From the NCBI GenBank assembly GCA_021613535.1, contig CP075492.1:12586001-12650000 (forward strand): DNA of 64,000 bases, read 5' to 3'. Under the pieces are notes generated by a model that saw nothing but the letters and a program-made list of their open reading frames with translations, was not told the origin of the DNA and did not search any database. The position numbers were made by a program, and so were the translations under genes. This document shows positions 20,935 through 31,249 of the stretch, in pieces (position 1 is the first letter of the stretch; each line of letters starts with the position of its first letter). Source of the DNA: Adineta vaga. Taxonomy: Eukaryota; Animalia; Rotifera.

Positions 20935-22677
20935 ATGACTGATTATTTCAGCGATTTACCAATCGAACTAATTCACAAGATTTTCGACTACATTCCATCA
21001 TCTGATATTCTTACCTCTTTGTGCTACGTAAACGAACATTTTTGTGTACTTTCTCTTAGTTACTCTCGCTTTCAAATTGACTTTAGTGATGTAAAAAACA
21101 AGAAGCATTTCGATAACTTCTGTAGTCAATTATTTTCTATATCGTCTCAAATTATTTCAATATCATTTTCCGAGCAACTCGATCTAATGTTACCTCACAA
21201 GATTGAACGGTTCTTTTCCAGCTCTGACATCTTCAAAAATTCATTTTCGAACCTACGTTCACTTCGTTTATCTCATGTTGATGATAATTTGTGGATGGTA
21301 ATGAAAAATTATATTAAATCGCTCGAATCGCTCGTATCACTTTCTGTATATTCGGCCGATAACTTTTATACCAACAAATCAGAGAAGTTTATTACACAAT
21401 TATTAAATGATTTATCATTTATATCGTCGTCGCTTAAGTCTCTTTGTTTACGAACAATTAATTCCTATAATTGTTGAGATTGCAGTTGTAATGAAGGACA
21501 AATTTCTTCAATTGAAGACTTGGTTTTAGATAATATATCTATCGATGTTTCTTATATACATGCTGTAGCTCCTGCTTTACGTGTATTAGAGACAAGAACC
21601 GAGTTATTTGACTGGACTGCCATTGAACGTTCGTTTTCACCTCAACATTTAACAAAGTTATTTCTCGATGGCTTAAACAGTTTTTATTTTTCGACAATAG
21701 AAAAGTTACTTCATCAAATGATAAAACTAACTCATTTGACTATTGACGCTTATTATATGGGCTTTGACATAATCGATGGTGCTGCATGGGAACGAGTACT
21801 ACATAATATAACTACATTTAAATTCTCATTTAGTTTTCACAAAAGCACCTGGACACAAGAATCGGTTGAGCTCGAATCGTTTAGTACACCATTCTGGCTC
21901 GAAGAGAAACGCTGGTATGTTACGTACGATAGATGCACTGTTAGTGGATTCTCGTTACTTTATTCAACTCCTTATTTTAAAAATATATACTCATGGACAT
22001 ATGTAAAAGGACCTATCATGACAAAATCAACTAAACCACAAGTACTTTCATACAGTAACATCAATTATCTATATGTCAATTTGAAGTTTCCAATAAATAC
22101 TGAAATTCTACGCCGATTCACAAATATCCAGACATTAAACATTCGATATATAGATAGATATTTTTCAATATTGATTCGTGATATTGTTCCGTATCTTGAT
22201 CTATCGAAAATCACTATGTTTTTTATACAACCATGTTGTTTCACATTGGATCTAAATGTTCTTGTACGATTACTATCCAGTATGTCTCGGTTACGTTCTT
22301 TTGCTGCTCCAGTTACTTTTCTTAAGTTTCTTTCCGCTTACCTCTGGCCGAATATCAATCGATTACGAATAATGTTTAGTTTTCCGTCTGCTCCTCTGCA
22401 AGAAAAACAACTGACATCAAACGAGATTAATACATTGTACCACTCATTTGATCATGTCGAACATATCAGTTTCTTTCACGATACTGACTTTAATCTTGCC
22501 GATTATATAAATAATATGCCGAGCTCAATATTTAGTATAGTGATTCATCAACCTATCAACGTAACTGACTCTTCTTTCGATGAATATATTACATGTGCTT
22601 GGCTTGAGCGAAAGACACGATTGCGTAACTTTTCTTATTCATGCAACAAATTAAATATCGTAACTGTGTGGCTTTAA
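20935..22677 (+). pseudogene. F-box + leucine-rich-repeat gene interrupted by one in-frame TGA (21475-21477)
   Basis: FSDLPIELIHKIFDYI F-box; LxxLxL repeats; IIDGAAWE and SFSTPFWLEEKRWYV family motifs; the two ORFs are in the same frame with a single stop between. Confidence 0.8.
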
Positions 22678-23254: not shown

Positions 23255-24765
23255 TCATTCTTTCTCTTCTTCAGCATCATCATTATTTATTATCACCATT
23301 TGGGATGTGATTCTCGATCCATTGGTAATTCCAAACGTAGCTGAAAGTTCATGATCGTCCAGTTCACCTTGGATACTATTCTCTAGAAGAAAAACGATGT
23401 TTTATTGATATAATCTCGTTTAAAATGACTATATGAACCTTCTTCTTCCTCTGAGCCATCAGTATCATCGCCAGGTTTCTGAGTCTTGTCCAATTCTTCT
23501 TGTTCCAATTGTTCCTAAGAATGTTTTATTCAAATAAAAATATAATTTGCTCAATTTCAATCGAATTACTTGAAGTGCTCTTTCATGAGCATCAGTGATC
23601 ACTTGTGGTTCCATTTTAACTTTAAATATTCCTCGATATTTTTCAATACTTTCTTTGATTCTTTCCATAACTTTTTTTAATGCATTGATACCTTTATTGC
23701 CATCCAAACATGTTGCTGTGACAACATAAAGTGGTGGAGTAATGAGGTTGATCTTTTCGGAAAATGCAAAAGTGAAAAATATATTTTCATAATTGGGATG
23801 ATTGTTTACTTTGACTGGCATTTCTTCAGTAGATTCTTTCAAACCATCTCTAAGTGCTGCTTTAACTGCGTCGATACCTTCATAATTAAAGCATGCTACT
23901 TCAACATCTATGAAATGAATGAAATGAATGAAATAGAAATTTCGAAAGATGGATAAAAAGGATGTTCTTTACCAGCTCGACATTTCACCGCTTGAGTAGC
24001 AAGATGACGATGAATGTTACTAATTAAAATTGTTCTGGTATTTTCATCAATCGGACAATCGTCGAGTTCTTTTTCATTACTAAAATATAATTATGTATGT
24101 GATATACTATCATGTTGAATAACATTTACTTCATAACTCGATGAAAAACATCATAAGCAGCACCCTGTTTTTTATCTCTTTGATCGTAAAACCAAGCAGT
24201 TTTCTCATATAATTCTTCAAATTCGTCATTTGTTTGTAATTCTAATTTTTCAGCTGTTTGGCGAAGAATGGTATTCACCTAAAAGACAAACTGTTTAGTC
24301 TTTTTTCTTCATTTTTCGTACAAATCAAACGAACTATTTTGCTTCGAAAGAACTTTTCTTCACATCTAGCGGCTTCTTCCGATGATGCACGACGTTTCGA
24401 TAAATCAATATAACCTTAGATGATAAGTTTTCATAATATCAAATTTATGCATTTCAAAAAGATTAATAATACCTTTCTCTTGATCAACACGAACAACAAC
24501 GACGACTTCATTTCGACCAACACGTACCAATTTATGAATCGAACGTATTCGACGAGGTGACAATTCTGTTAGTAGTATCATACCTTTTAGGAAAAATATC
24601 AATTTACAGAAAGAAAGAACGTATGAAAAATAATAAACCTTGTCTGTTATTATATTCGAAGAGATTTACATAAACACCTAATTCTTCGATTTGAGTGACA
24701 TTGACCATGACCAGATCTTCGACTCGCGGGAGCTGGTTTTTATAAAAACGACACGTGAGATGCAT
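23255..24765 (-). CDS. EIF2S1: Translation initiation factor eIF2-alpha, divergent copy, 9 exons
   Basis: [30 protein letters not shown]|[25 protein letters not shown]|[18 protein letters not shown]|[29 protein letters not shown], acidic tail; the exon joins I traced keep frame to TGA at 23255-23257. Confidence 0.93.
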
Positions 24766-25041: not shown

Positions 25042-27117
25042 ATGAAACAATTGCTCCTACTACGTCGTTCATTGATATCAGTACGATTTTCTTCGTATTC
25101 GGTATCACCAGGAGCAACTGTTAGTCATGATTGGCCAAATCCACCAGTACCAGCAGAAAATGTTGATATAACTATTGCAGGAGGTGGACTCGTTGGAAGT
25201 GCTATGGCACTTGCATTTGGTAAAATACTTATATTATCTGTTTCGTTTATGTATAAATATTTTTTTAGCGGCATCTCCATTGTTTAAAAATCATAAAATA
25301 ATTCTTCTGGAATCTCAATCCAAACTACCAAAAGTTTCAAAAAATCAACCATATAGTAATCGTGTTTGTGCTTTAAATAATCAATCGATTAGTCTCTTTC
25401 AAAGTAATAATTCAAATTGAACTCTTCTATTAAAACCCAAAACTCTGTTTGTTTTCTATTGTTTAGAACTTGGTGCATGGGATTTAATGAAATCAATTCG
25501 TATACAAAAAGTCTCTCGAATGCAGGTAGAATTCATCAGATAATATCTAAATGATATATTCCTATTATTTAATTTATAGGTTTGGGATGCTTGTTCTGAA
25601 TCATTGATTGCGTTTGATCCAACAAATCAAACTGACGATAATTCTCTTGCTTATATTGTTGAAAATGATGTCATACAATCCTGTTTACTTGAACGTTTAA
25701 AAGAATTCAATGTTGAATTAAGATTAAATTCTAAAGTTAAAAAATTTGAATATGATGAAAATTCTATTCGCATACAATTACAAGATGAAAAAGTGAATCT
25801 TCGAACAGGATTATTAGTATGTTTGATTTTAATAAAAATTTCGAACAATCATGTGTTTTTATTCAGATTGCAGCTGATGGATATCAATCAAGTATACGTG
25901 AAATGGCTGGTATTTCCACAATTCAATGGAATTATGATCAATTTGGAGTTGTTGCAACATTACAATTAGCAGATAATGTTTGTCAAATTTATAGAAAAAC
26001 AAAAACGAACAGATAATTCATTATCGAACAATTTTTAGATGCCAGACAATGTTGTTGCTTGGCAAAGATTTTTACCGACTGGTCCAATTGCTTGTCTACC
26101 GGTAAAACGAATTCATTTATTTTGAACGATGATGTATTTTTTCTTCGTTTAGTTGAGCAATACACATAGTTCATTGGTATGGACAGTGCCAAAATCAATG
26201 CATAAAACGATCATGAAACTATCTGATGAACAGTTTGTTAATGAAATCAATAAAGCTTTTGTAAGAAAATGAAAAGAATAATCCAATTGAATTGATTGGT
26301 ATTTCATTTAGACATCTGATGTTTACAAACAAAATGTTGTTGTTTCAATAACAGAACGTTTACGATCCTATTGGCAACAGATCATACCAGGTATTCATCG
26401 AAATTTTCTTCTCATCAATAGATTTCTCTATCATTTTGATCTTCAACTAGCTTCACCAACAATTCCTCAATATCCACCTACAATAATCAACGTCGAACCA
26501 AGATCACGAGCAGCATTTCCATTATCGGTAAAACAGCTAAGCATTTAACTTTTTTTTTAAATATGTTCGACATATTTGTAGCTTCTAAATGCTAATCAAT
26601 ATGTTCGTCCACGTTTAGCACTTGTTGGGTAAGATTAAATCTTCTGAAATCAAAAATTAAAGTGAAAATTCTTAATTGTCTTCAGAGATTCAGCACATCG
26701 TATTCATCCAATGGCTGGTCAAGGAGTAAATATGGGTTTTGGTGATGTTGAATGTCTTGTTAAAGTACTTGAGCAAGCTGTTCGAGACGGTGCTGATTTT
26801 AGTAAGAAATTCTTTAGTTAAACATTCGGTTTTCTTCAAAAGATTCGATATAGATTCGTTAACTTATCTTGTGGATTATGAACGACAACGTCAAGCTCAA
26901 TGCTTAGCACGATTATTATCAATCGATTCATTAAATCGTCTTTATTCAACGAAATTTTTACCAATTGTTGCACTTCGTAGTGTTGGTCTCAGTTTTGTAA
27001 ATGAATTTTCACCATTCAAAGTAAATTTATCTTTCGACTGAATTGATCACAGGAGTTTCTTTCTCTGATATTTTTTTCTAGAACTTTTTTGCGAAACAAG
27101 CATCGTCAAGTTCTTGA
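25042..27117 (+). CDS. COQ6: Ubiquinone biosynthesis monooxygenase COQ6, mitochondrial, multi-exon
   Basis: Presequence-like N terminus; DITIAGGGLVG, YSNRVCAL, MQ|VWDACS, AYIVEND, AADG, AWQRFLPTGPIACLP, DSAHRIHPMAGQGVNMGFGDV. Confidence 0.95.
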
Positions 27118-27402
27118 TGACATATTACGAAAAATTTTGTTTGTATTTTTGTAATCATTAAATAAAACAAAAACTATATCGGTGGTTGCCGAGTATCAAA
27201 CCAAAAAAGTGTAGAAATGTTTTATAGACTTTGCATTGGAAGTCATTTTAGAATAACAAATATGTAGTTCTTTTTTCACTCTATCACCATTTGCTACTTA
27301 TTATCGCCAATTCTTTTTTTCATCGTCATTGCTGACGAAGTAAAATTCTCCTGTTCTCTTTATATTTACAACGCGTGGCAGTTTTACTTGCATTCGTATA
27401 CA

Positions 27403-28366
27403 ATGACTGATTCTACTGATTTATCAATAGCTGCAAATTGGATTCAACAATCTTCTTCTATATTAATTGCTGCCGGTGCTGGTCTTTCTGCTTCAGCAAT
27501 TAATCCACACTACAATGTTGGTCTTGATTATACATCCGTGGCTGCATTTCGTCAATTATATCCTCGCATGACTCAAATTTCATCCATGCGTTGTATGTAT
27601 GACGCCATTGGTAAACATGACTGGTCTCCCGAATTAATGTGGGGATACCTTTTTACACATGTAAATAAATGTCGTTACAATTGGGGTGCTACAACTGTTT
27701 ATCAAGACCTCAAACAGATCATATCAAATCAATCAATTGATTCATTTGCTGTTACAACCAATGCAGATGGAATGTTTGAACAGAATAAATTTGTAAGTTC
27801 ATGAAATAAAAATTGAGATCGAATACTTTTTTTAACGTGATTCTTTGATATAGGATATGACTCGTTTCTTAAGTACACAAGGTGATTATTCTGTTCTTCA
27901 ATGTTTAAAACCTTGTTCACGTGAATCGGTATATGATGCTCGTCCATTTATTGAACATGCACTTCCTCATGTTGATCCACAAACAATGGAAATACCTTCA
28001 AAATATATTCCACGATGTCCTCGTTGTCATGGACCGATGTTTTTCTGTGTCCGTGGCGGAGATTGGTTCATTGAATCAGCGTTTGATGAACAACGAAAAC
28101 GTTATCATGATTTTCTTCATCGTGCAATCGGTCGAAAAAATGAATTGTTTACAATTATTGAAATTGGTGTCGGTTTTAATACTCCAAGTGTTCTTCGTTG
28201 GCCAATGGATCAATTAGTTAGTAAATTTCCCAATGTAAGATTGATTCGTATCAATATGCATGCACCGGATGTACCCGTTGATGCGCGTAAAGAAAAACGT
28301 GCAATTGGTTTTGATGGAAATGCATCAAACGTTATTCATCAACTAAAAGAGATGTCTCGAACATAA
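27403..28366 (+). CDS. Class M sirtuin (SirTM-type NAD+-dependent protein ADP-ribosyltransferase), 2 exons; horizontal-transfer candidate
   Basis: LIAAGAGLSASA..GLDYT, WGY, TTNADGMF, TQGDYSVLQC-x3-C (Gln where deacylase sirtuins have the catalytic His), PRCPRCHGPM..CVRG, EIGVGFNTPSVLRWP, LIRIN. Phase-0 intron 27793-27853. Confidence 0.88.
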
Positions 28367-29648: not shown

Positions 29649-29722
29649 CATAGTTGTATTGCTTAGTATTCTCATTCTCCTTTTCTTGGATAGTGGTGAT
29701 TGCGTACATTCAGCTCTAGAAT

Positions 29723-30746
29723 ATGTCGTTCGTTGGACCTGCTTATGGATCATTGGCTGCTAATCAAGCAAAGGTGAAATATAGAGATCATATGATATCG
29801 TTGATTTCTACATTAGATGTATTAGTTTAGAATGACTAGTTGAATTATTTCCATATGTATCTTCGAAAATACTTTCTTAGAATGAGAAATAGTTGTTGTT
29901 GTTATTTGTTATTTGAGTAACGTATTGTCGGATCGATATCTTTATGTTTGAGAAAGAGACAGAGAGAGACTCTTCCGGATATGACTAAATAGATCTTTTG
30001 ATATCTATTAATATCTTTTATTTTTCGTCCTTGGAATGGCGTCTGACTGATAGTTGACTGTTTAGATCGCAGCAAAACGTGATCCAAACCTTGATCGAGA
30101 AGCACAAGAATGGGTAGAAGCAGTAATCGGAGAGAAATTTCCAAGTGGATCCTATGAAGATGCACTCAAGGACGGTGTCATCTTATGCAAGTATGTTTTC
30201 ATCTAATTTTTCCACTGATTATTAATTATATCTAAATAAATATCTATCAGATTGATAAACAAACTTCAACCGGGTGCAATTCCTAAATATGCGACATCAG
30301 GTGGCGCATTTAAATTACGCGAAAATATTTCACTCTTTCGTAAGTGTTATCTTCTACGTTGATTTCGTATTCTATATTGTTGAACATATTCTTATAGAAA
30401 ATGCTGCGCGTGCTTATGGTTTAGGCGATTCGGAACTTTTTCAAACGATTGATCTTTTTGAAAAGCATAATATTCCTCAAGTCACTCAGTGTATCTTTGC
30501 ACTCGGTCGAAATGTGAGTGGCATATTTTGTTGAAATCTTCATGCATGTTTTTTGTTTTTCTCCAGGCACAAAAAAAGAAATTTAATGGACCAACACTTG
30601 GTCCGAAAATGTCTGATGCGAATGTGCGAGAATTTTCCGAAGATCAATTACGTGCTGGACAAAATTCACTTGGTTTACTCAATGAAGGCATGAATAAAGG
30701 TGCGAATCAATCAGGCCAAAATTTTGGTCTCTCACGCCATATTTAA
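29723..30746 (+). CDS. Muscle protein 20/myophilin/transgelin-like calponin-homology protein, copy 1
   Basis: GPAYG..K|IAAKRDPNLDREAQEWVEAVIGE, YEDALKDGVILCK|LINKLQPG, FQTIDLFEKHNIPQV, GPTLGPK, REFSEDQLRAG, NKGANQSGQNFGLSRHI. Confidence 0.93.
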
Positions 30747-31249
30747 TCATCAAATATAATCTAGGAAAACGATATCTCCTTTTTCTTTCTCAGATGCTTT
30801 TTGTAATTCACGAACTAAAAATTTTAACCATTGTTTTAATAAAGAATAAACAATCATTGGTGATGAGATTAATCAATAGAATCTAACTAAATATACAACA
30901 GGTTTCATTTTCCTCTTGAAATCATATGGCGGATTGTTGAATTGTATGGCAAATATATTCATTAATAATTTTGACGATAAAACGATGCATGACTTAATTT
31001 GATGAGATCATGTTTATTCTAGCGAAAGTGATTATTATCTCATCCATGATAATTCATAGAGTTCTAATGAATGAAGAAGATACATACGATGTATGTACAT
31101 TGCCTATAAAAAATGGTTCATATCGTTTGTTGTATAACAATCCGTCATTATATTTCAAACGTAAAACAAAACTCGAAAATTGAATCTTCTCTCGTTCTCC
31201 TACTTTCACGAAAACAGTTCGAATGATCGGTTTGTTTTTTGTAGGTACA

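Follow-up and report, generated by a model that had tools for sequence, protein, structure and literature searches.

A divergent eIF2-alpha ohnolog with proline directly after Ser51 in a bdelloid rotifer

Few regulatory sequences of eukaryotic translation are as conserved as the ELSRRRIRS loop around Ser51 of eIF2-alpha. In the bdelloid rotifer Adineta vaga, a stretch of 64,000 nucleotides (the window, C3:12586001-12650000; the genome amounts to 100.8 Mb in six pieces, with ca. 31% G+C) holds an eIF2-alpha gene in which the arginine following Ser51 is replaced by proline. This locus raises the question of whether such a gene encodes a maintained isoform with an altered stress switch, a spare copy adrift after duplication, or a canonical protein misread at one base.

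The window gene and its Ser51 loop

The window eIF2-alpha gene lies on the minus strand at 23255-24765 and comprises 9 exons encoding a protein of 352 aa with an acidic tail; its 8 introns (50-65 nt each) are all bounded by GT..AG, and frameshifts and stops are absent. Exon 1 (24639..24765, with the ATG at 24765) encodes residues 1-42 plus the first base of codon 43 and carries the clade markers C5, YVNL, and NNRQ described below as well as a private M29L. Exon 2 (24473..24583) contains Ser51, Pro52 (CCT), and two private changes in helix 58-63, N59H and I62V, while exon 3 (24335..24414) continues with (G)YIDLSKRR and contains a private V89A. The KGYID docking motif (K79-G80-Y81-I82-D83) spans the junction of exons 2 and 3, with the G80 codon split by the intron, and is intact, so the initial annotation was right about both this motif and the reading frame. 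Exon 4 (24130..24278; residues 107-155 plus 2 bases) and exon 5 (23973..24079) are followed by exon 6 (23810..23907), where the EIF_2_alpha C-terminal region begins, by exon 7 (23570..23752) with six derived residues common to a second species (listed below), by exon 8 (23439..23514) encoding an acidic linker, and by exon 9 (23255..23382) encoding a divergent acidic tail up to the TGA stop at 23255-23257. Alignments, trees, and rate estimates are based on joined CDS models, and database searches were run with single exons.

Read on the minus strand, positions 24547-24567 of the assembly sequence give ACA GAA TTG TCA CCT CGT CGA, that is, T48 E49 L50 S51 P52 R53 R54, with the Ser51 codon TCA at 24558-24560 and the Pro52 codon CCT at 24555-24557. 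This reading and a phmmer alignment agree with the codons and positions first reported for this locus: exon 2 aligns over 36 of 36 residues to human eIF2-alpha 44-79 (E ~1e-11, phmmer against the PDB), as well as to yeast and other eIF2-alpha chains in the PDB, and the loop differs from its human equivalent by S48T and R52P only. The complete loop is T48-E-L-S51-P52-R-R-I-R-S, so that R53, R54, I55, R56, and S57 are retained but the Arg-rich S-loop ELSRRRIRS fails to match, with ELSPRRIRS in its place. ELSRRRIRS is a conserved regulatory feature, and the eIF2-alpha fold is not defined by the S-loop. By S1/OB homology, the EIF_2_alpha domain PF07541 (29.2 bits against a cut-off of 22.8 in a six-frame genome scan), the combination of Ser51 with KGYID, and orthology to ORFs that carry the S1 domain PF00575, we assign the window gene to eIF2-alpha. 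Assembly of its product with eIF2-beta and eIF2-gamma and a role in the ternary complex are supported only indirectly, through purifying selection over exons 1-7. Canonical EIF2S1/SUI2 shares with the window copy the S1/OB domain, Ser51, the R53-R54-I55-R56-S57 stretch, KGYID, the EIF_2_alpha middle and C-terminal domains, and the acidic tail, but has a near-invariant Arg52 where the window copy has proline and lacks its N59H, I62V, V89A, M29L, and L36F changes and its fast branch.

Two old ohnologs and the lineage-specific origin of Pro52

Six-frame scans with exon 2 and PF07541 detected only 2 eIF2-alpha loci genome-wide, the window gene and a second one at C6:2400712-2402218 with the loop TELSRRRIRS and thus a canonical Ser51 switch. 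Exons 1-8 are equal in length between the two genes (127, 111, 80, 149, 107, 98, 183, and 76 nt), intron positions and phases in exons 1-8 are identical, and 16 of 16 introns are GT..AG; given the identical exon lengths and intron positions, neither copy is a retrocopy. Both genes sit in a block of ca. 50 kb that is collinear gene by gene, though inverted, between window 4000-52700 and C6 2421000-2371200 (tblastx), and over residues 1-275 the two proteins share 72% identity (NG86 dS ~1.0, dN ~0.18). The collinear duplicated block and the common intron positions identify the pair as old ohnologs with dS ~1. Bdelloids underwent an ancient genome duplication, and the pair fits this history. The initial annotation had taken the window gene for a specialised paralog and proposed to look for further copies in the genome; paralogy is borne out by the canonical gene in the duplicated block, and that gene on C6 is the only other copy. 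We refer to the C6 clade as type A and to the window clade as type B.

The two blocks differ in some of their other genes. The gene at window 29700-30750 is single in the window and has two tandem copies on C6 (C6:2394500-2395400 and 2397600-2398200; 65-83% identity, tblastx). Directly downstream of the window eIF2-alpha gene, a single-exon ORF of 385 aa (21520-22677, plus strand) is unmatched in the collinear C6 block, and the same is apparently true of a COQ6-like FAD monooxygenase gene on the other side (25042..27100, end approximate, plus strand). The latter is arranged head-to-head with eIF2-alpha, with 277 nt separating the two start codons, and served as a synteny anchor. A second and block-specific anchor is a SirTM-type gene of two exon ORFs (27388..28366, plus strand), of which an exon lies 3.3 kb from the window eIF2-alpha gene and the C6 block has no counterpart.

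A search with the SirTM exon matched more than 20 bdelloid ORFs, and the contigs of several of them (L012, L017-L019, and L020/L021) contain an eIF2-alpha gene in the same position and orientation as in the window; L012 also has a FAD_binding_3 ORF where the COQ6-like gene would be expected. The eIF2-alpha gene is not reached or is absent on the contig of the closest SirTM match (P0191, 85%) and on those of P0198 and P0200. An exon-4 scan of metagenomes, with a best identity of at most 69%, added the contigs L022-L027. The window copy, L012, and L017-L027 have in common the type-B markers C5, YVNL, and NNRQ in exon 1 and VN.ILR in exon 4, and the NNRQ site has the ancestral (N/D)IE in the C6 copy, in the canonical gene of Didymodactylos (L029), and in a non-bdelloid outgroup (L028). 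Some features of these contigs vary: exons 1-2-3 and 5-6 are fused by intron loss in L017/L018/L019/L023 (L017:2101-2418 and 1628-1831), exons 2-3-4 are fused in L020/L021/L024 (L020:3485-3820), and the window copy retains all eight introns. An LPMO_10 (PF03067) ORF directly upstream of SirTM (L020:6683-7447, L021:5303-6100, L014:4905-5405) is missing from the window interval between COQ6 and SirTM (27100-27388).

Three conservative syntenic type-B lineages (L012; L017-L019/L023; L020/L021/L024) have a canonical exon 2 with TELSRRRIRSINKLIRVG. The syntenic orthologs (L012, L017-L019, L020/L021) thus resemble the window gene in neighbourhood, orientation, and the markers C5, YVNL, NNRQ, and VN.ILR, but differ from it in keeping TELSRRRIRSINKLIRVG, in evolving slowly, and in having only 2-6 private changes. 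Codon 52 is CCT in the window, CGT or CGC in conservative type-B genes, CGA in the C6 copy, and AGA in Didymodactylos. Since no fewer than three other bdelloid lineages have Arg52 in their syntenic orthologs, R52P is, on this evidence, a one-base change (CGT>CCT) that arose within the window species' own lineage. The single-base origin suggested initially hence agrees with the CGT found in most orthologs, but the Ser-Pro pair is not conserved in relatives, as Pro52 is absent from those same lineages. S48T had been counted as part of the rewritten switch and has to be set aside, because T48 occurs in both paralogs and nearly all other bdelloid copies. The unusual N-terminal residues reported alongside it fare only partly better: M29L is private to the window copy, but most of IEE.GVYV is likewise found in both paralogs and nearly all other bdelloid copies.

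Accelerated change under constraint and Arg52 loss elsewhere

Of 281 aligned residues, 73-77 differ between the window copy and its type-B orthologs, compared to 17-28 among these orthologs themselves, and in the protein tree the window copy has a terminal branch of 0.37 against a median of 0.009. At 37 sites that are invariant in all other bdelloid copies it carries a private change, and 20 of these sites are conserved in the outgroup too; conservative bdelloid copies have 2-9 private changes. Those within the S1 domain are M29L, L36F, R52P, N59H, I62V, and V89A. We estimated omega with a branch model (our own GY94/F3x4 implementation; 281 codons of six sequences under two topologies, with L026/L027 represented by a composite of these two near-identical contigs) and obtained 0.077-0.099 for the window branch and 0.037 for the background, values to be read with a poorly resolved internal topology (bootstraps 28-58) and a dS near saturation. 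Two ratios fit better than one (p = 0.0045 and 0.026 for the two topologies), and a foreground omega of 1 is rejected (p = 2e-9 and 3e-21). The window copy is thus accelerated yet under purifying selection, and not decaying. The initial annotation had named absence of the proline from orthologs with a dN/dS near 1 as evidence that would speak against its proposal; the proline is indeed absent, but omega is ~0.08-0.10 and neutrality is rejected. The window copy shows a somewhat weaker codon bias than the C6 copy (ENC 45.8 versus 39.9), which hints at lower expression.

The accelerated lineage has a second member. When representatives were searched exhaustively with exon 7, no match exceeded 67% identity; among the matches were P0037, a 118-aa fragment from an ENA metagenome contig (L011, 679 nt), and P0042. 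P0037 forms a clade with the window copy (support 92/91 to 100/97), at a dS of 0.83 and with the exon 6/7 intron kept, and at six sites that are otherwise invariant both carry the same derived residue (R242G, G259S, I269V, K274Q, V279A, and D280H). The contig stops short of exon 2, so that the comparison covers exons 6-7, where 8 of 12 window changes fall on sites also changed in P0037, 6 of them to the identical residue, and 4 changes in 93 aa are private to the window copy. This large overlap suggests that the shared changes probably predate the split of the two species, and the pattern resembles a burst of change that later gave way to conservation. Judging from these two genes, the age of the accelerated lineage exceeds that of a single species, and it has survived at least one speciation. 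The first 45 positions of the contig (L011:1-45), directly before exon 6, are a Nextera-adapter-like string, and this contig end is an artefact.

Arg52 has also been lost in another branch of the type-B ohnolog. Two metagenome contigs with the NNRQ marker (L026:459-566 and L027:132-239, JGI contigs Ga0116229_10337007 and Ga0116231_10197356) encode TELSNRRIRS, i.e., R52N with the codon AAT, which is two steps away from CGT and likewise from CCT. They represent the only other accelerated type-B lineage, with ~26 private changes, and are thus like the window copy in belonging to the same ohnolog, in being accelerated, in lacking Arg52, and in the common changes D78E, D157N, V203I, E244K, and D281E, but unlike it in having Asn (AAT) and not Pro (CCT) at position 52. 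The two accelerated lineages changed at 11 common sites where 5.4 were expected (p = 0.007), and among outgroup-conserved sites only at 6 where 1.7 were expected (p = 0.0016), position 52 included. Neither a clade of the window copy, P0037, and L026/L027 (AU p = 0.16) nor one of the window copy, P0037, and L020 (support 69/84) is rejected, so that Arg52 may have been lost once or twice in the type-B ohnolog. Acceleration alone does not remove this residue, since two divergent rotifer copies, the second Didymodactylos gene (L037) and the G+C-rich L038, keep SRRRIRS. The former (L037:2867-5150; Didymodactylos carnosus, GCA_905250885.1 CAJNOQ010004055.1) is a very divergent eIF2-alpha gene with ~57% identity to both the window and the C6 copy and with SELSRRRIRS, that is, S48 and not T48; more than 1.2 kb separates its exon 5 from exon 6, and the annotation splits it into two genes (200 aa and 129 aa), of which the C-terminal gene model is P0042.

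Searches for further Ser-Pro sequences were negative within their scope. Pro52 was found in 0 of 33 exon-2 ORFs of the protein collection, all of them canonical, and an exon-7 ORF search of that collection gave canonical-type ORFs only; the window's own exon ORFs are not part of it. A back-translated degenerate Ser-Pro pattern had 0 matches in metagenome contigs and prokaryote genome contigs, and in the literature we found no paper that links eIF2-alpha variants to bdelloids and none that describes a natural R52P. As far as could be seen, Pro52 is confined to the window lineage, though records of close kin may be missing from the collections.

The divergence of the window copy could reflect tolerated drift in a redundant duplicate, with the C6 gene doing the essential and regulated work and the window gene persisting as a low-expressed spare; R52P would then be nearly neutral or mildly harmful and have no regulatory meaning. 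The many private changes, an omega 2-2.7 times that of the background, the weaker codon bias, and the restriction of Pro52 to the window lineage fit this explanation, as does the observation that phosphorylation tolerates R52K in the human protein (PMC6589776). However, omega is just ~0.1 with neutrality rejected at p <= 2e-9, and 9 of 9 exons and 16 of 16 splice sites are intact after a dS of ~1. Furthermore, the accelerated lineage outlived at least one speciation, after which exons 6-7 of the window copy changed little (4 private changes in 93 aa), and Arg52 is also gone in the other accelerated lineage of this ohnolog (L026/L027). We therefore regard drift as possible but somewhat unlikely.

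It is very improbable that Pro52 stems from faulty base calling or assembly, or from an allele private to the sequenced clone, and that the real or common codon is CGT. CCT is a single base away from CGT, and no second Ser-Pro sequence was found in the protein collection, metagenome, or prokaryote contigs. Yet the assembly is chromosome-scale, position 52 is replaced in two separate contigs (L026 and L027), and the odd residue is in character for a copy with 37 private substitutions including N59H, I62V, and V89A nearby; as the whole copy is divergent, the window gene is not a canonical one with one odd base.

Possible effects of Pro52 and what they would mean

The reading that we find best, and to which we give an even chance, is that selection maintains a divergent form of eIF2-alpha in which coupling of the Ser51 loop to eIF2B and the eIF2 kinases is reduced. 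According to this reading, the window copy is the type-B ohnolog left by the ancient bdelloid genome duplication, and the integrated stress response in its ordinary form presumably depends on the type-A ohnolog on C6 with its canonical loop. On the way to the window species, the type-B copy underwent a burst of amino-acid changes, partly common to at least one other species. Because the gene is intact and under purifying selection, its product is expected to be a working protein. The CGT>CCT change puts proline in place of Arg52 directly after the phospho-acceptor Ser51, at a position where most non-CMGC (non-proline-directed) Ser/Thr kinases disfavour it. Together with the nearby N59H, I62V (both in helix 58-63), and V89A, Pro52 may cause poorer phosphorylation of Ser51 by eIF2 kinases and/or an altered reading by eIF2B, so that the window loop is probably less coupled to both. 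The outcome would be a partly stress-uncoupled pool of eIF2 alongside the canonical one.

It speaks against this reading that eIF2 kinases recognise eIF2-alpha mainly through distal docking. The local change at Pro52 may thus matter little, all the more since human R52K is phosphorylated in cells under arsenite, unlike R54K (PMC6589776), and distal docking via KGYID could still permit phosphorylation of the window copy. For eIF2B, the structure of the productive human complex with eIF2 shows the unphosphorylated S-loop bound to eIF2B-beta, with a salt bridge between R53 and E135 and a potential hydrogen bond from R52 to N132, and the N132D variant designed for a stronger contact with R52 doubled exchange activity (bioRxiv 10.1101/504654). 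Upon phosphorylation, the S-loop refolds to a short helix and I55, I58, and L62 become exposed (bioRxiv 10.1101/504654), while helix 58-63 contacts eIF2B-delta and Met-tRNAi (PMC6572841). On the kinase side, PKR binding by the viral decoy K3 is influenced by the residue aligned to Arg52 (PMC11556786).

The S51-P52-R53-R54 sequence of the window copy fits the CDK/MAPK consensus S/T-P-x-K/R as a sequence match, and Ser51 might have been handed to proline-directed kinases, which would tie the isoform to cell-cycle or MAPK signalling. The S-loop shows only partial order in yeast eIF2B with eIF2(alpha-P) as solved by cryo-EM (PMC6572841), in keeping with this idea. We nevertheless give it little credence: its support is the motif match, and the parallel lineage L026/L027 went from Arg52 to Asn and not to Pro, which suggests loss of the arginine and not gain of a Ser-Pro site.

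Viral eIF2-alpha mimics offer another comparison. The poxvirus protein K3 is small and S1-only, without a phospho-acceptor serine. Poxvirus K3L and ranavirus vIF2-alpha are like the window copy in combining an S1 fold and KGYID with a residue other than Arg at the position aligned to Arg52 (His47 in K3), and the window copy keeps KGYID, G30, and Y32, but it is full-length with Ser51 and with constrained eIF2-gamma-binding C-terminal domains. That it is an endogenous pseudosubstrate decoy binding eIF2 kinases through KGYID as K3 does is extremely unlikely, since H47R, which restores Arg at the K3 position aligned to Arg52, strengthens PKR antagonism (PMC11556786) and loss of Arg52 should consequently weaken a decoy; we reject a K3L-type decoy on architecture (352 aa, Ser51 plus PF07541, not a stand-alone S1 domain).

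Two domain scans concern the partners of eIF2-alpha. The eIF2-beta/eIF5 domain PF01873 is found at ~9 loci genome-wide, including a tandem pair at C5:11109631-11110016 and C5:11114532-11114917, and several such loci beside a divergent alpha copy raise the idea of a variant eIF2 complex. A PF12745 scan for GCN2 had zero matches in the rotifer's own genome and zero in the controls as well.

A functional meaning of Pro52 in the candidate divergent isoform is plausible. The more far-reaching proposal, that some bdelloids have a selected second isoform with the Ser51 switch disabled or re-addressed (by Pro here and by Asn elsewhere), is tentative and in our view unlikely. If it is true, part of the eIF2 would go on initiating when the canonical isoform is in its phosphorylated state, and the animal would have a bypass of the integrated stress response built into its genes. 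To our knowledge, engineered S51A alleles and suppressor mutants of yeast are the main examples of eIF2-alpha insensitive to this response. An animal isoform that naturally has proline at Ser51 +1, with a canonical partner and under purifying selection, would test how much weight the local loop has for eIF2 kinases and eIF2B. Should R52P be neutral, the pair would still be a record of the asymmetric evolution of essential-gene ohnologs after the bdelloid genome duplication. Bdelloid rotifers survive desiccation and heavy radiation, and a maintained isoform of this kind would suggest how an extremely stress-tolerant animal divides stress-regulated from stress-resistant translation.
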